From Dimorphilus gyrociliatus (lineage: Eukaryota; Animalia; Annelida), in the NCBI GenBank assembly GCA_904063045.1, contig CAJFCJ010000109.1, forward strand, positions 1-46,350: a stretch of 46,350 nucleotides of DNA, read 5' to 3'. Position numbers and translations under genes: made by a program. This document shows positions 1 to 39,519 of this stretch, piece by piece (within the stretch, counting starts at the first letter, position 1; each line of letters opens with the position of its first letter). The notes under the pieces were generated by a model. The model worked only from the letters and a program-made list of their open reading frames with translations, was not told the DNA's origin and searched no databases.

Positions 1-826
1 GATTCATATGGAATGATACAGCTTGATGTATAGATTATGCAGTGCTTTGCAGTGTTTGTTAAAAACTTTTGAGAAAAGTTATATGTGCAAATGTTTGGAT
101 GATCCTGAAACTTGTGTATTGTTCAATTGGATATGAGTAAAGGTCATTAGAAGGAAGCTTTTTTGAGTATAATTTGAAGTTTCTAGGTGTTTTAAGGTGA
201 CGGCATTTGGCCTAAAGTACATTTTAAACAATGTGACAATATTTCTTACTTTTTGCTTTGTTCTGGAAAGCTGTTATTCCATAATTTTAGTAAGTCAGAA
301 AATTGCATAAGATGTAACATTTTTTTGGTAAAAGTTGGATAGCTTCCAACACAAAAGAATAGACAAAGGTCAATATAATACAGTCTGGTTATTGAACAAT
401 TTACAGGAAATACCAATAATTTTATTGAGTGTGACATTACTCTCAAAAACAGCTGGAAAGTTTCCATATGTTTTTGAAGAGATCATTAGGGATTCTAAAT
501 CTGAATCTTTAGGTTCATGATAGAAATAGTAGTTTTCAAAAAATAATAGAGTATAATCTTGAATTTCTTCATCCCTACACCAAACACTATGTTCAACTCT
601 GCTGATACTTGTAACATTTAGTTAATATTTACTCAAAATTTTCATTCTCAACCCTTCTGAAGGTTTATTTGTTGAAATATTATGATGCTTTGTATAGCCA
701 GCATTTCTACAAAGTGAAGCCTTGGAATAGAATATAAAATTGGAAGATATAGATGAAAAATAGTTGGAGAGTTTGTACAGATGGATGAGTGGATGGATAG
801 GTAGATAGTTTTGGTTGGGCAAACCT
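1..826 (-). pseudogene. Probable degenerate ectodomain exons (SRCR-like) of a GRL101-like receptor paralogue running off the left edge
   Basis: Acceptor-like 'tattttag|' at ~826, then a frame containing LCRNAGY. A later frame contains IIGISCK. Both resemble the LC/ICxxxGY/F and terminal-Cys motifs in the ectodomain of the 17.4-25.3 kb gene. Several stops and frameshifts are present. Confidence 0.3.
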
Positions 827-955
827 AAAATATCAAAAATCTCACTCTTAACCTAACAATTGTTACAAAAAAGCAACAAATTGGTTTGTCATTTGTTGAA
901 ATATGAAGAGTTACAATTTCTATAGAAAAAAAAGTCTACATAAGTATATAAAAAA

Positions 956-1147
956 GGGTGTGATGGAAAAAGTCCACAAATCGATACTTTTACCCTAACC
1001 CTTGTGATTGCCTAACATTTTCCATCAGCCCTAACCCTTAAATGAGATGCCCGTGAGTATAAATCAGCATATGGTGTATGCTAACCATTTTTCGAACTAA
1101 AATTGAACCACCAAAAAATCACATTTGTGGATATTTTCCATGACCCC
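956..1147 (-). mobile_element. MITE (telomere-motif family), copy A
   Basis: Imperfect TIRs GGGTGTGATGGAAAAAGTCCACAAAT (956-981) and ATTTGTGGATATTTTCCATGACCCC (1123-1147). Internal ttttaccctaaccc is the reverse complement of the GGGTTAGGGTAAAA signature in other copies. Confidence 0.75.
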
Positions 1148-1239
1148 TTTAAAAAAAATATATTTGGCTTTAGCCATTTTCTAAAATATTCTATTTTTTA
1201 AATACAGTTATATATATATATATTTATATATCTCTCATG

Positions 1240-2040
1240 CTAAATAACTTTTGATGTCTCAGTAAAGATATTTCATCTCATATACTCTATTATTGTCAAT
1301 AAATATTGTCCTCTGGTGGGAATCATATTGATGACTTTAAAGTGTAGCCAGATCATTTTTTAGATTCATCATCATTATTCATCATATATGTTGCTCCAAA
1401 GATGGTTCTTCAACTTCCAGAACAGAAAAAAAGTCTGATGGAGCTAGATCTTGGCTGTTGGAGGCAAAAATTTCTATACATTTTTTTCCACTGACTGGTG
1501 GTAGAGAGTATATGGCATTATCATGTTGTAAAATCACTCCTCTATTATGTTCAGTAAATTAGTCGCCTCAGTCTCTTTAAAATATTCATTTAGACTTTAT
1601 GGTTTATAGTGAACAACTATTCCTCCACTTCCTCTTAATACTTTTCTAAGAGTTCTGTAAAAATTTCTCTACCCTTACATATTTCTGAACTCAATAATAA
1701 GCTGATAAGGAATCCACCTTGACAATATTCCTTTTCCCAAATTTTCAATAGCAGCAATAACTCAGTCTGACATATTCAACAATTTTCTTTGATTAGTGCC
1801 AAAACTCTCTTTACTTTCATCAGAACCAGTTGTTTTTGGGCGTCCTAGCCAGTCTTTAACAAGTTTTCTGTTCATATTTGCTCAAGTGCTCAATGTCACT
1901 TCCTTACTGAACTGTCATTGAAGGTTGAGTCCCCAAAAGCATCTTTCAATTCCTTATGAATATATTGTGGGCAAAATCATTAATAACTTTTTATTTAGAG
2001 ATCATAAAGTCATTGGAAATGTCAGTGATAGTTTATTATT
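1240..2040 (-). mobile_element. Decayed, internally deleted mariner (DD34D) transposase
   Basis: The minus strand reads IHKELKDAFGDS (~1929-1965), GRPKTT, RGVILQHDNA (HDNA at 1514-1525) and DLAPSDF (1431-1450). These are canonical mariner motifs, with many stops and frameshifts. Confidence 0.85.
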
Positions 2041-2097
2041 TAACATACACTTTTAACTTATAATAGTAAGATATAGGCCTACACTATCACTTTTAAA

Positions 2098-2343
2098 TTA
2101 TCCCCAACAGCAAGTACTTATGTAAATACCTCTTTTCAGAGCACAGATTTTGGCCATAAAATGGAAATCATCAAATCCCATATGAGAGCAAATTTTCTCA
2201 TAAAATGATCTTTTATAGTTGAAATATGCTAGGTAATGAGTTGATCTTTTGGGCATTATTTTGACATTTAAATATCCATATTTATGTGTTTGACATTCAG
2301 TAATCTTTTCTAAGATATAATGAACTGATTGAAAATTATACAT
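2098..2343 (-). pseudogene. Degenerate SRCR-like ectodomain exon of a GRL101-like paralogue (5' part of the locus at 1-826, separated from it by mariner and MITE insertions)
   Basis: YGYLNVKI...SFYEKICSHMGF parallels VLGLVTF...SFENILCEYFGY (24944-25330) and FGILYVK...NELCKLLGY (23667-23984). Confidence 0.4.
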
Positions 2344-3799
2344 ATATATATATATATATATATTATATAAAAATTTGAAATTTTGTCATAAAATTCATTT
2401 TTTTGATTCATCATTTTCTTTCTTTTGTTTAAGATTTTAAAATTATAAGACAAACATTTGTTTTATTAGTTTTTTTTATTATTTCCTTATATTAAAATCA
2501 ATTTATGTATTAATTTTCAACTTCATTCATGTTATTACTTTCTAATTTTCATAGTCTGTTTTATTAATAAATAAGAGCTGTAGCTCAATAATTTAACTTG
2601 ACCAAATAAAAAAATAAGCCTATCAGATTTAATAAAGTTGTGCACTTAGATGTCACTCAGAAGTAGTTTAAAGGACGAATTTGATTGTGATGACAATTAA
2701 ACCTCTAGAAAGACAGCAAAGAAGCATTGACTTAAAACAAATTTTCAAAAGCAACAGTAACTTTTTTTTATAGAGATTTTTTGAATTGAGAAACCCTAAA
2801 AAATTTTATTGAAGTTTGACCATATTTGAAACCCAATTTTTGGCACATAGACTGAGTTCTATCAAAAGTAAGAAAGCTAATGCATATTTAAAACCACCGT
2901 TTTTCAAGGAAAATTAATGAAGTTCATGTGAATTCTGAATATTTGTTTTTGTTGAGATGCTGACAGAGATGTGAGTGGAAAAATTTTCTTCGATTATATA
3001 AAGCAATATGGGCATCTGAATGAAATTATTTTGACAATTAAATTAGGATATTTACAATGAAAAATTCATGAATACTCTCTTTCTCATCTATAAAATTATA
3101 AATTTGATTGAATGATAAGAACCGTTAAATTTTTCATCTTCATGGCAAGCATAGGTTGTTACATAATATCTAGTTGTAGCTTCTTTTAGTGGGCACTTGT
3201 CAATAGAAATAAAAAATTTTCAGTTAGTCAACTATTCTTTCCTAAAAAAAGTATATACATTTAAAATTTAATTGTAACCATTTCGATTGAAAGAAGAAAG
3301 TGTAAGAATCGGCAGTGCTATATTTTGTTCATTGCAGAAGTTGATGCTTTCTTTTCATTGTCTTATTTGGAAAATGATGAACATTGGAGAAAAAGTAGTG
3401 GCAAAGAGTATTCAGTTCTAGGACTGACATGTTCAAATAGACTGATATGGATTATTTTTGCAATATTAGGTTGCGCTCAATACATAATCTTTTTGATAAA
3501 TTCATCATTTTTAACAAATAGGAACTTTATCTGTTTTCTCTCATATTCCATGGAATGATGATTATCTAAGTGTAATTATTTTAGTTGCAATGAGTCTGAG
3601 TGGAGTTTTGGATCCATTTTGGCTTTAAAACAGGTCACAAAGATAATAATTTTTCATCATTCAAAAAATGTATCAATGCATGGAAAATTTGCTTTCAATA
3701 ATTTATTTTATCAAGTTATAAGTAGGAACTTTGAGCTCATTACAATCAAATTTGTCCTTTCCAATCATTTACCAATGTGCCAAAGTACTTACACAAATA

Positions 3800-3822
3800 G
3801 GGTTAGGTTAGGGTTAGGGTTA
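3800..3822 (+). repeat. Interstitial TTAGGG-type repeat
   Basis: agggttaggttagggttagggtt. Confidence 0.8.
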
Positions 3823-3981
3823 TTAAATTAAATGATTAAGTAGTTTTGCAACTAAGTTATCACATTTCAAGAGACCCAAGTCAATAATTGGTTAGCAATA
3901 ATCAGAGAATGGTTGTTTTTTTTTTCAACTATTTTGAAAGAATCTTCAAAAAAAAATATTTTTTAATTTTTCCTACCACAT

Positions 3982-4040
3982 GACCTACCACAGTTTCGTC
4001 CTGCTCTCTTTTTTCAATACCAAGGACTCATCAGGGTCTA
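3982..4040 (-). ncRNA. Minimal type I hammerhead ribozyme (Penelope-like element/retrozyme type)
   Basis: Minus strand: GACC-CTGATGA(4034-4028)-GTCCT[20-nt loop]AGGAC-GAAA(3997-3994)-C[TGTG]G-TA^-GGTC. The catalytic core is complete. Stem II has 5 bp, stem III has 2 bp plus a tetraloop, the cleavage triplet is GUA (cut after 3986), and stem I is GACC/GGTC. Confidence 0.8.
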
Positions 4041-5326
4041 TTAATATTTATACTGCAGAGAGGTTGAAGACATCCATTAGGGATAATTCTTCTTCAGGTA
4101 TATAGTGTATTAGGAAAGAAGGTGTTGTTTAATCAAAAGCTGCCTTCCAAATGAGTGTTTACTATTAAGTTGGTTAACTTTTTCATGGGACTGTGAGAAC
4201 TTTAAGAATGTAGTTGATGAAATATGATAGTTTGAACAAGAATGTCTAGTTAACTTGGTGGATTTTTTATAACATCCTCAAAAGAATATTTTACAAAGTT
4301 TTGTAAAAGAAAGTTGAATTTGAATATAAACTGGCTTCAAGAGATTATTTGTTAGTTAGCTATTCTTTACATTCAAACCAGCTTTCAAATCTCTAGCATA
4401 TTTATGACCAACTTTTTTTACTTGTATAGAATATATAAGGGAAATAGGTAAAAAATTCAGTTAATGTATCTCAGTAACCAGTTGGGTGATTTTGATGGAA
4501 TTTGAAGCAAATTTAATGGCAGAGAGAGAGAGAGAGAGAGAAGATGTCTTATTACAAACTCTAAAAGATGTCAAATAGCTTTTGAAAACTATTAAATATT
4601 TATTTTCAAAACAAAAGCCCAATATTTATATGTATAAATTAAAGAAAGTTATGTGTGAATATGCTCAAACTGTGAAAGCTAACCCTTTGTAATGAACAGG
4701 GTTAGAAAAAAAATGGAAGTAAATTTAGAGAAAGCAAGAAATAAAACGTTTCTTGAAAATTGAATGGAAAACTAATATTGTATATTGTGTGTTTAGGATA
4801 AAGAAAGAAAATGAACTCAGATTGGAGAATACACAAAAGAAAAAGATAGTTAAAAACTTTTAAGTTATATCATGTAATAGAAAAAAGGAAAGATGAAATT
4901 ATTGAACATATATGGAAGATTGAAGAGAACAGCCTTTGAGTATAAACATTTCTGTAAAGACTGGCTGATGTAGATATCAAAAAAAAAGTTTCAATACAGT
5001 TTCTTAGTAACCTTGACCTTTAAATAAATCACTCTGTCTATTTGCTTCAATTGAAGCTTTAAACCAGAAATTTTTCTACAAGAATGGACAATAATTTGAA
5101 AGAGGATGAATCTTTTAAATATGATTTATATAAATAAAAACAATTGAAGCTTAGCATGCTTGATTATATTCTTCTTTGAATCTTGAACAATCTCCCAATC
5201 CATAATCCTATACTTTTAAGTAAAGTTCTCTATGGACGATCCCATGCTGCTCTCTGTGTTGTATTGTAAGTGTAGGAACTTGTAGCTAATCACAATTGAA
5301 TTTATCCTTTCCTAACAAATTTATCA

Positions 5327-5418
5327 ACAACAACAACAACAACAACAAGTATTTTGTCAAATAGAATATGTATTGATTAAATCTAACTGCTAAACTCTAA
5401 TAGTAGTAGTAGTAGTAG
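5327..5418. repeat. (CAA)n and (TAG)n microsatellites
   Basis: A caacaa run at ~5327-5348 and a tagtag run at ~5400-5418. Confidence 0.9.
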
Positions 5419-6648
5419 TTTCCATACAGAAGGAGGGTATGCTTGAACCCTCCACTTGTACATTTGTATCCCCCACCCTAATTAGGTGAGTCTAAACTAA
5501 GGGTTAGAGATAATAAAATAGTGAAAACATGATTTTATGTATGGGGTAAAAATTATCACATCCAATAATATCTATTTTTGCACAACAGTTTTCAATTGTA
5601 AGATTTTTCTTACTAATTCACCAAATGCTTTAATATTGTCTTTTTCTTTCTTGGGACTTTTTCTGGTAAAATTTTTGCAACATATCTTGTATGTTGAATC
5701 CGTGCGCTAAATGATAGGGACAAGATTTAAACTACCAAAACAACTATAGAATAGATATAGTGGACTAGAAGATGTCCTCTTTTAATAGAGATAATACAAG
5801 TTGAATAATGGAAAAATAATGGAATAGAAGATGAAACAGTAAAAAACTGGTGGACATTTTCTATTTCTATACCACTTTGCAGGAACCAGTTGAAAACGGC
5901 CATAAATGAATTATATTTGGGACAAGACAGCTGCTGATATACATTTAGGAGGATCCAATCTTACGCATAAACAAAGTTGGGGGTCAAATTATAGATTTAC
6001 GGCCATTTTCTATTGCATCCCACTTTGTTAACAACCTGATATTTTATATTTTTTAAGCCAATTTCTTGTTCAAATGTTATAGATTTCGAATGAGTGAAGT
6101 ATATTGCCTGACAAACATTCTTGATGCAATGAATATATTCATTATTTGAAAAAAAATTTTATATTTAAAAAAAGATGTTTTGTTCCTATGGTTACTTTTC
6201 TTTCTGTCTTTTCTTATCTTTAGTCTCCTTCAGGACCTTTGAAATATGGCTAAGAATTAAAAATAAGGGGTTGGATATTGAATTAAGTGGAATAAGCGGT
6301 ATAATTATTAGTTTTTAAGATTCATTCCCAATATTTATAGGATAAAACCCAGAAACCATGCCTGAAAAGAAGGATTATTTTTTTTTGAAAAAATCAATAG
6401 ATGGGTGGAAAATTTTTTTTTACATAATGATGAAATTGGTAACCAAGATAAAAGATTTAGTAATGCTATAAACAGAACAGATATTTTTACTCTTGAAAAT
6501 TTTTTTTGACTTACCTTGATCGTCTTTTTCATATTTTGCGCTGATTGGTTCACGTGTCTTATAATATTCATGTATAAAAGTGCCAATGAAATACTGATTG
6601 AATTGATCAATAGGCCATAGATAAAGAGTGATAAAATCCGGGGTCAGG

Positions 6649-7794: not shown

Positions 7795-10700
7795 TCTCTT
7801 TATTTTTACAGTTTGTCCTCAAAATGCTAGTTTGAAAATATATAATACTTGCTATTTTATATTTGATCAAAAAGAAAAGCATTCAATACAAAGGATTCAT
7901 GAAAAGTGCAAAGTGAAAGGTTTAGTAATGATTGAAGAACCATTGAATCATTCACAATATATTTATGAAATAATTCTATTTATGAGATTTTACTTGCACA
8001 ATTCTACAAAAGTTACTTTTGCTGACCTATATAATTCTCAAACTTCTGTTGGTAAAACTATGTTAGTCATTCCAACAGGTAAAAGGAATTATGGATAAAC
8101 CTTCCCCTAAACATTTTTCTCTAGCTTTACAACAGGTTCAAAATTTGAAATTTAATATAACTTTGTTTACACCAACCTTAATGCCATGGAATTTTTGGTC
8201 TGGCTACAATCTAATCACTAGAAAGGTAGGTGAACATTTCATATCTAATTTCCTTTTAAAGTATACTTTTTTTCCTTATTTATTAAACTTAAAATAGGAA
8301 ACTCTAGAACAAGTTGCACTTTTGCAAACTGTTCAAAATTATATATCTTTTCAACTTGCCAATGCAAATCTTCCAGATGGGAAATGTTTTCTTAATAAAA
8401 GACTGACTACTACTGTTGGTGCACTTAGCTTTCATGTATTTATGAAAGTTCCTGTATCATGTACACAGAGAATTGAAAGTTCACTATTCTGTCAACTTTA
8501 ACCAAGTATATTCCATGATTTTTTCAACAGTTCACAAACCTTAATTCATATTTTGTTTAGGAAATGCATCATTTCATCACCAAATAAGGAAGCTTAATAT
8601 AAATATCACATTTTTTAACTGTTCTTCATTCAATTTTCTTTGTTTAAAAGATCAAATTTGTATATCATTAATTCAAGTTTGTGATGGTGAAAAAGATTGT
8701 TTTTCTGGTGAAGATGAAAGAAATTGTCCTCAAAATACAAAATTTACTTGTAATACAAATAATCAGGAAATTTCTTTCCAATATCTTTGCGATTATATAC
8801 ACGACTGCGTTGATGAATCTGATGAAATTTTTTGTAGTTTTCACACTTGTTTCGATTTTCAATAGTAGGCCTATTCAAATTGTTTTTCTCTACTTGACAT
8901 ATGTTTTTTACTATTCAAATTAGTTCTTGTATAAATTACCAATGTATTCAGTACAAGCAGTCATGTGACAATGAACGAAATTGTTATGATTTTAGTGATG
9001 AAGACTGTCTACATTATAAATCGAAAAGTATTGCATCCAAAAGTAAAAATAGACTTTTTTTTCTCTCTCTCTCTCTCTCTCTTCCCTTTTCTTTTAAAAT
9101 GTCTCTTTTTTTCAAAATCCCCCCTCTCTCTCTCTCTCACAAAAATGAAGCAATTCAAGAATGCAATACTGAATTACAATACATATAAACCAAAGATATT
9201 TTTGCGTGATTATGTCTATGATTGTAAAGATGGTACTGATGAAGATGAAGAATTTTGCTCAATGCAAATACTTTACAACAACAACATGTTTGAAATAAAT
9301 TTTCATTTGCTTATAAAAATGTCCATAGATTTAACATCTAAGATTTGGGGTTAGGGTTAGGGTAAAAGCATAACTTTTTGTAGACATTTTTCCATATTAT
9401 ATCATACCGTATCATTCTTTTCATGTATTCTCTCTATCATAGCACCTGTAATCTTAAATACGATTCTATGGGGAATCTTAAAACAAACATTCGCGAACCT
9501 TTTTCTTTCTTGAAAAATTGCTCAAAGAAATCTTGCTCTGAAGGAGAATTTCTATGCAAATCATCAGGATATTGCATCTCCATTGAGCAAGTATGCGATG
9601 GTGTAAATCACTGTTGGTATAACGATGATGAAACTAATTGTGGTACCTGTCTGATTTAAGCCTAAAGCGAGAAAAAATAGATAAATTCATGAGGTTAATT
9701 TTTTTTCTAAGGTGATTATAAACCAAAAGGATTTTTCAAATGTCAACTTGAAAGTAAGTACATCAATTTGGATAAGATTTGTGATGGAATAATTAATTGT
9801 AAACATGGCAATGATGAATTGTATTGTCCTTCAACTACAAATGTATGCTCACCAAAGTGTTCATGCCAATATGGCTATATGATTGAATGTAAATCAAACT
9901 ATGCAAATAATCAAGAATTGAATATTGAAAATTTAAATGGATATTTAGCAAAAAGTTTAAAAGTGGAAAATATTCTAAACATTTATGGATTATTTTCATC
10001 AAATGATCTTGTAAAATTGACAATTATAAATTGTAAAATGAACAATTTACTTGAACATTTCAAACTACCAAATCTATTCTTTTTGAATTTGACAAATAAT
10101 CATTTCAAAGACTTAAAAGATATAATTGTTAATGCAGATAATCTTCTATCAATACTTGATTTATCATATAATCCTATTGCTTCTCTTAATGATATTGATA
10201 CAATGATGATTAATTTAAGAATACTGAATTTGTCCTATACAAAAGTTGCATCTTTGAAGAAAGAACACTTTAGAGCAGTGGGAAAATTGAATGTTTTGTC
10301 TATTAAAGGATGTTCTATAGGAACCATTGAAAGTGATATTTTTAAATTGAATAATCTACAAACTCTGGATTTGTCCTTGACTGACCTACCTAGAGGACAG
10401 TTGAAGAATCTTGTCAAGAATCTACAAAATATAATTGTAATAGAAAGCAAATACTTTCTGGCCTGTTGCTTTGCATTCAAATGTTCAAAATCAATTAAGA
10501 ATTGTACACCATCGTCTTCCGTTTTCAATACTTGTTCAGACTTCGTTGCATCCAATCTATTGAATTTTTTCCTGTGGATATTTGGGGTTATGGCTCTGAT
10601 TTTCAATTGTATATCAATCTTTTGTCATGTATTTGTTATTGAAAAATTGTCAAATTTATTTTATCTATCGATGTCAATTTCTGATTTATTGACAGCCGTT

Positions 10701-10965: not shown

Positions 10966-11099
10966 GTGTGATGGAAAAACACCCAAAGATGAAGTATTTA
11001 TAGGCCAAATTTTTCAGTTGAGTTAGGGTTTAGTATGGTCAAGGGCTGGGTTAGGGTTAGGGTAAAGCAATATATTTGTGGACATTTTTCTCATCACAC
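10966..11099 (+). mobile_element. MITE (telomere-motif family), copy C
   Basis: TIRs GTGTGATGGAAAAA and TTTGTGGACATTTTTCTCATCACAC. Internal gggttagggttagggtaaagca. Confidence 0.8.
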
Positions 11100-14286: not shown

Positions 14287-14380
14287 TGATGGTTAGGGAC
14301 AAAAATGCGGAAATTAATTTACCAACAGTTGGATTAGGGTTAGGGTTAAAATGCAAAATTGGGGACATTTCATCCGCATC
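14287..14380 (+). mobile_element. Diverged telomere-motif MITE copy
   Basis: ttagggttagggttaaaatgcaaaattggggacatttcatccgcatc mirrors the family right end. A related remnant lies at ~15483-15541. Confidence 0.5.
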
Positions 14381-28578: not shown

Positions 28579-29329
28579 AGTAGTATTAGGTTTCTCATTA
28601 GCATCAATTAGAAGACTTGCAATTGTCTTTCATCTTCTAAATAATAGTTGCATTTCGAAGGTTGAAGAGTTGAATAAGATGTAACAATTTTAATAGGACA
28701 AGTCGAACAATGCAGAAAACATAGGGATTATATGTTTGACCGTTTTTTATATTCTACTTTTAAAAATAATAATGAATTGTTCTACTAAACAAGTTTAGCA
28801 TCAACATATAAGGAGGAAGCATATTGGATTATTATGCTATTAGCAATATTGTATATACAATACTGCATAATAGTATCTAAGACTTGAAATAAGTATAATT
28901 ATCAATTAAGTAAAGTCAATTTAGCTGCATTCAGAATTTGTAATATTCAAGTTAAGTTGTAAATTACAATATTTAGCTTCAAATAGTTTGCCACGCCTTG
29001 TACAGGCGCCGCCCTACACAAAAGTAAGTCAAGCCTGCTTATCTCTATCTACACTATCAGTACAGAGCAATACTAGTTTAATACCACTTGTCTATTGCAG
29101 AATAGAGCTGACGAATGTATTGTGCCTATGTGTACAATTGTTTTATATTTTTTAATTTTTCCAAATATTTAAGTTTTTTTATTTTTTAATAACAGCATTT
29201 TCTTTTGATTGTCGATGTACCTTGTATTGTAATTGTAGAAATTTCTGCTTCTTCACAACAGTATTCGTACTCTTGAATCATTTATCAACTCACCAAAGTA
29301 CTGTTCCTAATAGAACTTTTTAAGTTTGT

Positions 29330-29870
29330 CCACAATCTTATGTATATGATGGTAAGGTTGATTGTTATTCAGGCATTGATGAAAACCATGAATATGATTC
29401 AGATAGTTACATACATAATTCATGTAATAAATACAAATATTCTGATAAGAATTGCTCATTCAAAACTTCATCACTTGGATTTTCACTTACAAATATGTTT
29501 CTTCAAAAAGAATTGTCCTGATGGAAGTGATAAACTTTTGTATCCAACTCCAACAATTCAACACATCCATTGTCAGCTAATTCACATCTTTCAAATGGTT
29601 TGTGGCGACTCTTCAAAGACTTGCCAAAGTGTAGACCTAGGCAATGCAACTTTTGAAAATGTACAATATTTGAAATTAATAAAATTCATTGGTGAAGTAA
29701 TAAAAAATGTGACTATTCCCAAAATTCTCAATTATATATCAGCTTTGATTACAACTGCTGGATGTATCTTTTAATAAAAAGTTGGTGTCTTTAAAGAGAG
29801 ATGATTTTGAAAATGTTCCAAACTTACAGAGATTATTCATTGTCAAGTGTAAATTGAGAATATTGGAGGA
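29330..29870 (+). pseudogene. GRL101-like paralogue 5 relic (LDLa + LRR-like fragments)
   Basis: YDGKVDCYSGIDE and NCPDGSDK in different frames, followed by degenerate LRR-like sequence with stops. Confidence 0.5.
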
Positions 29871-30329: not shown

Positions 30330-30732
30330 GTGTCACTTCAAAAGTTACCATTAACTGATGGTGGACACCAATATGGAAATTGTAATTCATTGGAATAGAT
30401 CACTTCAACATTAACACTTTTAGGATAGCTCCTATATGTCTTTATCCTATGACCAAGAACATAGAGAAAACATGATACAGCTGTCAATGTAATTAGTGTC
30501 CAAAATACCCTTAGAAAGAGTTAAAGTAATGTAAAATTTTGAATTGTTTGTAAGGTTGTAGTCTATTTATATTTTCATACCTTCTTAACGAATTTTTTCC
30601 ACCTGTAATGTACTTTACACCATGGAATGCCGTGTCCGTATTGTTTGGGATTTTAAGAGAATATTTCTCTTCCACAATGTTTAAATCAATTGAAAAAAGG
30701 TTTTGAAAATATTCCAATTTTTTAACTAACAA
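30330..30732 (-). pseudogene. DEG/ENaC channel 5' fragment (HG motif, TM1, beta1)
   Basis: Exon DTAFHGVKYITGGKNSLR, 71-nt GT-AG intron (30580-30510), then RVFWTLITLTAVSCFLYVLGHRIKTYRSYPKSVNVEVIYSNELQFP. Homology stops after FP. Confidence 0.8.
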
Positions 30733-36922: not shown

Positions 36923-37047
36923 GGGGTCGATGGAAAATGTCCACAAACAAGATGGATAGGAGAAAAAGGATAGCCATTGATTTGTACTGAGAGGGATACC
37001 ATCTCAGGGTTAGGGTTAGGGTAAAAGCATAGTTTTGTGTGCCTTTT
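36923..37047 (+). mobile_element. MITE (telomere-motif family), copy D
   Basis: ggggtcgatggaaaatgtccacaaac ... agggttagggttagggtaaaagcatagttttgtgtgcctttt. Confidence 0.75.
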
Positions 37048-39305: not shown

Positions 39306-39519
39306 GGGAGCAATAGAAAACCGCCCTAAGAGGACATTTAAAGGCAGCATTTTGGGTTGAGAAATGGTTAAGAGGAAAAAAGCATTTATTGATTTGTAGT
39401 TAGGAGAGTACCATTAAGGGTTAGGGGTAATGAAAAAGGTTAGGGATACATAAGGGATGGTGTAGGTGTTAGGGTAAAACCATGCTTTTAGGTATGTATA
39501 GATGGTTTCTATTTCTCTT
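39306..39519 (+). mobile_element. Telomere-motif MITE, related subfamily
   Basis: Ends gggagcaatagaaaacc / ggtttctatttctctt. Several ttaggg units and gttagggtaaaaccatgc internally. Confidence 0.55.

Follow-up and report, generated by a model that had tools for sequence, protein, structure and literature searches.

Hammerhead ribozymes of Penelope-like elements (PLEs) were reportedly treated by Lunse et al. in 2017. In these ribozymes helix I measures 4 to 5 bp, a G10.1-C11.1 pair is present, and helix III is small, with positions 15.2-16.2 and the loop palindromic, which permits an active form made of two copies; they act as dimers (PMC4209133). They cut poorly in vitro, and most of the motifs found in genomes are solo and lie in truncated elements (PMC4209133; PMC7761336). 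Minimal PLE variants have an unpaired base between A9 and G10.1 (PMC4209133). In the Athena and Coprina PLEs, which are endonuclease-less, the hammerhead stands next to reverse-complement telomeric repeats (PMC8557442). The genome paper of the annelid Dimorphilus gyrociliatus makes no mention of Penelope elements or telomeres (PMC7854359).

Here we analyzed a stretch of 46,350 nt from the D. gyrociliatus genome, called the window throughout, in which an initial annotation had proposed a minimal type I hammerhead ribozyme. We conclude that the region from about 4250 to 3798 on the minus strand is very probably an old isolated copy of a protein-less, PLE-related retroelement of about 450 to 490 nt, which bears a hammerhead and a telomere-complementary tail. 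This retroelement was probably mobilised by Penelope-like elements. The features of the copy are collected in Table 1.

Table 1. Features of the hammerhead-bearing element and its surroundings, in positions of the window
Feature	Position	Strand	Basis or remark
Whole retroelement copy, ORF-less, older subfamily	3798..4250	-	5' limit approximate; about 450 nt
Conserved 5' segment CCUCUCU	4057..4063	-	Complement of the loop 2 3' part; possible strand of a pseudoknot or of an alternative fold
Stem I, 5' strand GACC	4035..4038	-	Window sequence; paired with 3982-3985 in 98% of family cells
Catalytic core C3-A9, CUGAUGA	4028..4034	-	Only N7 differs between subfamilies (U or A)
Stem II, GUCCU (4027-4023) with AGGAC (4002-3998), and 20-nt loop 2	3998..4027	-	Includes the G10.1-C11.1 pair
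Loop 2, 3' part AGAGAGC	4003-4009	-	Window sequence
Core G12 A13 A14 A15.1 (GAAA)	3994..3997	-	Window sequence
Stem III and loop, ACUGUGGU	3987..3994	-	Weaker variant of the palindromes ACCAUGGU and ACCGUGGU seen in the family; dimerisation helix
Predicted cleavage site, after A17 (3986) and before G1.1 (3985)	3985..3986	-	Hammerhead numbering applied to the window sequence
Stem I, 3' strand GGUC, and conserved post-cut block	3965..3985	-	GGUC itself is 3985-3982
3' tail, reverse-complement telomere repeats AA CCCTAA CCCTAA CCTAA CCCTA	3798..3821	-	Begins 164 nt past the cut site
Fragment of unrelated high-copy element X, 76 nt	3722..3800	+	Abuts the tail; junction TAG fits both sequences

Results

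The hammerhead motif in the window

The motif extends from 4038 to 3982 on the minus strand and reads GACC / CUGAUGA / GUCCU, 20-nt loop, AGGAC / GAAA / C-UGUG-G / UA (cut) / GGUC. All the core positions of a type I hammerhead are present (C3 U4 G5 A6 N7 G8 A9, G12 A13 A14, A15.1-U16.1 and H17), with the core positions U3987 and A3986 in place and the GUA cleavage triplet ending at A3986. The topology is likewise that of type I: stem I is open, there are three helices of 4, 5 and 2 bp, and stem II carries the G10.1-C11.1 pair. Stem III consists of A15.1-U16.1 and a C-G pair around UGUG, which amounts to 2 bp, or to 8 bp as a dimer. Our minus-strand reading agrees with the initial annotation in the core, the GUA triplet, stem II, the 2-bp stem III with its UGUG loop and the GACC/GGUC stem I. 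Beyond the cut, the family consensus is GGUCRAGUAGGUAGGAAA, a block that is 91% conserved across subfamilies and in which the window copy has a one-base deletion.

The ribozyme resembles the PLE hammerheads described by Cervera & de la Pena 2014 (PMC4209133) in being type I, with a 4-bp helix I, the G10.1-C11.1 pair and a palindromic, very short helix III. It differs from the minimal PLE variants in that A9 is directly followed by G10.1 in all copies (PMC4209133).

A search of the window against Rfam at gathering score matched no family. In E-value mode, the sole match was Hammerhead_3 at 3988-4058 (28.4 bits, local E 3.6e-4, gathering cut-off 48.5). Across the whole genome, the best Hammerhead_1 match reached 23.8 bits against a cut-off of 34 bits, and the matches were relatives within the same superfamily. 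The Rfam models penalise the long loop 2 and the minimal stem III. A family covariance model, R1, was built from 39 aligned copies and scored the window copy at 91.6 bits (E 5e-22), the window copy itself being in the training set.

The Hammerhead_3 match suggests a type III hammerhead. In a candidate fold of this kind, the upstream CUGCAGUA and CUGUGG form a stem III of 7 bp, and the cut is predicted after A4051. Such a stem can be drawn for the window copy, and the local E value of the match speaks for it. However, the score is under the gathering cut-off, the 16 nt needed for stem I are incapable of forming a hairpin, and the upstream strand is peculiar to the window copy; at this place the family carries CUGUAGGUGUAGG, a sequence that makes no pairs with the 3' strand. 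We rejected the type III fold because its stem III strand is unconserved in the family and its stem I cannot form, and we consider it highly improbable.

The isolated window sequence folds no better than shuffled sequence (z +0.94), and its monomer hammerhead fold has a calculated energy of -6.2 kcal/mol, versus -9.1 kcal/mol for the minimum-energy fold, which is a different one. By itself the motif is weak proof, because the core is expected 0.05 times per window and many windows were scanned. A chance match to a small hammerhead consensus in AT-rich DNA, with no ribozyme ancestry, would accordingly be expected many times over a very large scan, the bare core being short, and both the fold score and the lack of an above-threshold Rfam match are in keeping with it. 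The evidence against a chance match comes from the relatives of the window copy.

A family of hammerhead-bearing copies

The initial annotation had proposed a genome-wide similarity search for related copies. A search of the genome (78 Mb, 349 contigs) with window 3850-4250 found at least 38 further homologous places, most of which belong to a main family that is 77 to 81% identical to window 3932-4099. The aligned copies retain the hammerhead core and both strands of stem II, and the genome contains 22 exact matches to the core-plus-stem II pattern, versus 0 for a reversed control. Model R1 identified at least 144 hammerheads in the 78-Mb genome, a lower bound for which 150 of about 22,000 candidates were scored. 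In the window, the sole strong R1 match is the copy at 3982-4038, and the window copy is thus solo. As with the PLE hammerheads, there are many copies per genome in consensus families, mostly solo in truncated elements (PMC4209133).

A weak R1 match (18.7 bits, E 0.006) was also seen in the window at 30569-30646 on the minus strand. Its core is destroyed, and it is probably a very old copy.

Several subfamilies can be distinguished; their 5' flanks cannot be aligned, and the ribozyme is common to all of them. The core heptamer is CUGAUGA or CUGAAGA among subfamilies, so that N7 is the sole variable core position. N7 is the one free core position in hammerheads. The core is intact in 32 of the 39 aligned copies, a figure that is inflated because copies were partly picked by their core. 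In stem II, 21 copies have U-A at pair 10.5/11.5 and 17 have C-G, and a single copy shows C-G in place of U-A at 10.2/11.2. Over the 39-copy alignment, 94.1% of cells are paired in the type I structure, versus 18 to 53% when the 3' partners are slid by 1 to 3 columns. RNAalifold, run on the family, did not recover the hammerhead de novo. The covariation comprises few independent events because the family is young. A second superfamily has the stem II GUCUUU/GAAGAC.

These family data confirm that the hammerhead motif in the window is real. The motif lies within a repeat that has hammerhead-bearing relatives in the number given above; conservation falls on the catalytic positions while the free N7 varies; stem II shows compensatory changes; and the exact pattern is absent from the reversed control. 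On these sequence comparisons, a chance match is already refuted, and we give it next to no credence.

The stem III palindrome

Across the family, stem III and its loop are ACCAUGGU, ACCGUGGU or a near variant, each a palindrome or near-palindrome. Since stem III and loop are palindromic, two copies can form an intermolecular helix III of 8 bp. The calculated self-duplex energies are -13.2 kcal/mol for ACCAUGGU, -9.4 kcal/mol for ACCGUGGU and -3.6 kcal/mol for the ACUGUGGU of the window, whose dimerisation helix is wobble-rich and weak. A short helix I combined with a very short helix III and a palindromic loop, which is a PLE-type trait, is found both in the family and in the window copy. The proposal of a minimal type I hammerhead whose cleavage would take place in the dimer is upheld by the palindromic stem III, which agrees with the PLE hammerheads (PMC4209133).

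A conserved 5' segment complementary to loop 2

Within the variable 5' flank, conservation is confined to one block, AACCUCUC(U), which lies at window 4063-4057. Its complement is the conserved 3' half of loop 2, AGAGAGG, of which the window copy has the last base as C (4009-4003). In the main superfamily, the pairs between the 5' segment and loop 2 are held in 87.5% of cells. The second superfamily has CCCCUU and AAGGGG at the equivalent positions; if the two superfamilies are homologous, this gives two compensated positions in the helix. This pattern in the sequences suggests that, in the active fold, the 5' segment/loop 2 helix would be a pseudoknot joining the stem I side to loop 2. About 40% of hammerheads are known to have a tertiary contact of this kind (PMC3088659). 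The PLE hammerheads are described without tertiary contacts (PMC4209133), and in this they differ from those of the present family, which have a loop 2 of 16 to 24 nt with its 3' half complementary to the 5' segment. Alternatively, the helix could be inhibitory, because the minimum-energy fold of the unit RNA nests the same helix in a non-hammerhead fold. The complementarity offers a testable idea of why cleavage by these minimal ribozymes might be more efficient in vivo than in vitro.

Extent, tail and insertion site of the element

The initial annotation overlooked the telomere-repeat tail, the true extent of the element and the 5' segment complementary to loop 2. Decayed copies on contigs C274 and C60, whose cores are mutated at A6 and G12, are homologous to the window up to about 4248, and the 3' part of the window copy aligns with the tail region of the family as far as the telomere-like repeats. 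The window thus contains an almost complete unit that belongs to an older subfamily, from about 4250 to 3798. Family units, read on the sense strand, are about 490 nt long and end in ...GCAAA followed by CCCTAACCC(TAA), and 5'-truncated family copies stand immediately after CCCTAA-type tails. The carrier of the hammerhead differs here from that of the PLE hammerheads: it is an ORF-less unit of about 450 to 490 nt, not a demonstrated pseudo-LTR of a full PLE.

We sought an empty-site allele or a target duplication for the window element and found neither. The adjoining fragment of element X is not a clean split target, because overlapping X pieces occur elsewhere in the window.

Element X itself has at least 375 candidate copies, starts with TGTACTTTGTTGTATTGTAATTGTAGGAA and may be an LTR. 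Its other fragments in the window lie at 239-373, 5247-5327 and 29222-29335. Antisense X pieces come after the tail of the window element and also after the tail of the EN+ PLE on contig C80.

Tandem arrays and neighboring Penelope-like elements

Tandem copies and PLE ORFs with RT and GIY-YIG domains, which the initial annotation had proposed to look for, were both found elsewhere in the genome; the window contains no PLE ORF. The canonical PLEs of this genome have a single ORF of 650 to 880 aa with RVT_1 and GIY-YIG domains and are often in tandem. At three loci (contigs C80, C59 and C206), the immediate 5' neighbor of a 5'-truncated PLE ORF of the RT and GIY-YIG type is a hammerhead unit. 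On C80, a 488-nt unit ends in CCCTAA-type repeats 25 nt ahead of the PLE ORF; on C59, at least 10 copies of a 675-bp hammerhead unit form an array that finishes with (CCCTAA)3 shortly ahead of the ORF; and on C206, a hammerhead unit is followed by a frameshifted PLE ORF. This physical adjacency to RT and GIY-YIG ORFs may be a further likeness to the PLE hammerheads (PMC4209133). No hammerhead units were found 3' of a PLE ORF, and neither R1 nor a relaxed descriptor found a hammerhead within the 5.5-kb EN+ PLE unit of C59 and C80.

Several features of these loci were observed in passing. In the C59 array (123238-141762), each 675-bp unit has a compact hammerhead with the stem II GUCUUU/GAAGAC and the stem III ACCAUGGU. 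The (CCCTAA)3 is followed by a 5'-truncated copy and then by tandem 5,530-bp PLE copies with RT and GIY-YIG domains that are 99.9% identical. The EN+ PLEs have a 3' module of 1.84 kb, which is 98.5% identical between C59 and C80 and 95.9% identical between C80 and C206, and which ends in a degenerate telomere-like tail, CCCTAACCCCAAGACCTAA (about 133770-133790 on C59 and about 15675-15695 on C80). Despite this common 3' module, the PLE ORFs of C80 and C59 cannot be aligned at the DNA level.

Arrays of hammerhead units with periods of 606 to 850 bp were found on contigs C3, C59, C195, C70 and C51, mostly near contig ends, and on C207 two units lie head-to-tail, 457 to 490 bp apart. Such ORF-less head-to-tail units, together with a type I hammerhead that has a weak helix III, would fit a non-LTR retrozyme, in which tandem units are cut, ligated to circular RNAs and copied by a borrowed RT; the window copy would then be a dead single unit. 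According to PMC7761336, the metazoan non-LTR retrozymes (Cervera & de la Pena 2020) are likewise non-coding and tandem, with type I hammerheads, a weak helix III and low G+C. However, the units here exceed the 150 to 300 bp that the same source gives as usual in animal retrozymes, and their RNA is not strongly self-paired by prediction (z -1.49). They also differ from the retrozymes in having a defined linear 3' telomere-repeat tail and 5'-truncated copies, the truncations being variable. A linear tail with 5' truncations fits a linear RNA copied from its 3' end rather than circles. We regard the retrozyme explanation as unlikely, though worth keeping in view, and it overlaps with our preferred one, a PLE-related retroelement with a telomere-complementary tail.

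Two further arrays were noted. At the start of the 3.2-Mb contig C3, long hammerhead tandem arrays with periods of about 626 and about 698 bp occupy 5249-48673; this looks like a subtelomeric ribozyme satellite. On C105 (42060-43131), a 171-bp tandem satellite, with about 94% identity between units, adjoins a hammerhead unit.

Status of the window copy

Copies that start at the cut site were sought as a footprint of cleavage in vivo, and none was found among 35 exact matches to the post-cut block. Nearly all of these matches are parts of complete hammerheads; the start of a single truncated copy lies 7 nt upstream of the cut. As no copy starts at the cut site, the DNA bears no footprint of in vivo cleavage. 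The window copy is solo, shares 78 to 81% identity with the main family and has a dimerisation helix that is weak. For these reasons it most likely represents a relic that, judged from its sequence, would cleave itself barely or not at all and would serve no host function. The suggestion of a solo relic of a PLE- or retrozyme-type element is thereby borne out: the repeat is multi-copy and ORF-less, it is alone in the window, and sister units lie 5' of PLE ORFs.

As an alternative, the initial annotation had suggested a self-cleaving element that acts on transcripts between receptor loci. A ribozyme adopted by the host to process or regulate transcripts between neighboring receptor genes would accord with the intact core, with a GPCR-like exon about 2.3 kb away (7tm_1, 16 bits) and with the conservation of intronic hammerheads in vertebrates (PMC3088659). 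In contrast, the copy is solo and diverged, its dimer helix is weakened, and it is embedded among transposon fragments, with no coding signal detected within 2 kb and no recognisable exon within about 2.3 kb. These observations leave a host role unsupported, and we consider it very improbable.

A Pfam scan of the ten open frames in 249-6598 found nothing except the weak GPCR exon. The latter is an open frame on the minus strand at 6338-6598 with a weak match to the rhodopsin family, and it is the closest recognisable coding signal to the element.

Telomere-repeat tracts in the window

The window contains 12 short (TTAGGG)2 tracts in 46 kb, versus 0.07 expected by chance, and 10 of them are on the plus strand. 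Six of the tracts (1029-1040 on the minus strand; 9345-9362, 11051-11062, 14334-14345, 37004-37021 and 39415-39426 on the plus strand) are each preceded, when read on the C-strand, by a common motif of about 45 nt, which has a conserved, ATGTCCACAAA-like centre and ends near GCTTTTA before CCCTAACCCTAA. Homology between these six sites stops beyond the motif, and no hammerhead core was found within 420 nt of them. The six tracts might represent what severe truncation has left of the tails of another telomere-tailed retroelement, or else a short functional motif.

Discussion

We propose that the RNA of the element would bear a hammerhead of type I, in which stem I has 4 bp, stem II has 5 to 6 bp and a long loop, and stem III is palindromic and very short. 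Where transcripts are multimeric or abundant, two such ribozymes would pair through the palindrome, creating an extended helix III and thus a double hammerhead. This would cut after GUA and so process the element RNA, as proposed for PLE hammerheads and metazoan retrozymes. The telomere-complementary tail could enable priming by a PLE-type reverse transcriptase on DNA ends that are G-rich or broken.

The hammerhead is of the known Penelope type, and a tertiary contact of the pseudoknot kind is not described for PLE hammerheads (PMC4209133). We tentatively suggest, as a possibility that is far from certain, that protein-less elements with a hammerhead and a CCCTAA tail are copied in this genome by the reverse transcriptases of GIY-YIG PLEs both onto chromosome ends and into internal gene-rich DNA, that the 12 tracts in the window record this activity, and that the hammerhead uses a Watson-Crick pseudoknot between the 5' segment and loop 2.

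With Athena, Coprina and the Terminons (Gladyshev & Arkhipova 2007; Arkhipova et al. 2017), as presented in PMC8557442, the elements studied here share a hammerhead near the 3' end together with reverse-complement telomeric repeats, and head-to-tail stacks of 5'-truncated copies joined via telomere repeats. They differ from what that source describes in that the hammerhead is 164 to 255 nt from the tail and not adjacent to it, the PLE ORFs beside the units keep the GIY-YIG domain, and the host is an animal with TTAGGG telomere repeats. The window copy differs further in lying in a gene-bearing 46-kb contig, 3.8 kb from its end and without a terminal telomere array; many other copies of the family are near contig ends.

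The locus itself is of little importance, as it is a single decayed insertion that shows no sign of being used by the host. The wider meaning is that Penelope-type hammerheads with telomere-complementary tails are present in an animal lineage other than the rotifers, that one of their sites is no obvious chromosome end, and that elsewhere in the genome they stand beside PLEs that keep their endonuclease. If confirmed, this would blur the split between endonuclease-bearing internal PLEs and endonuclease-less PLEs that attach to telomeres.
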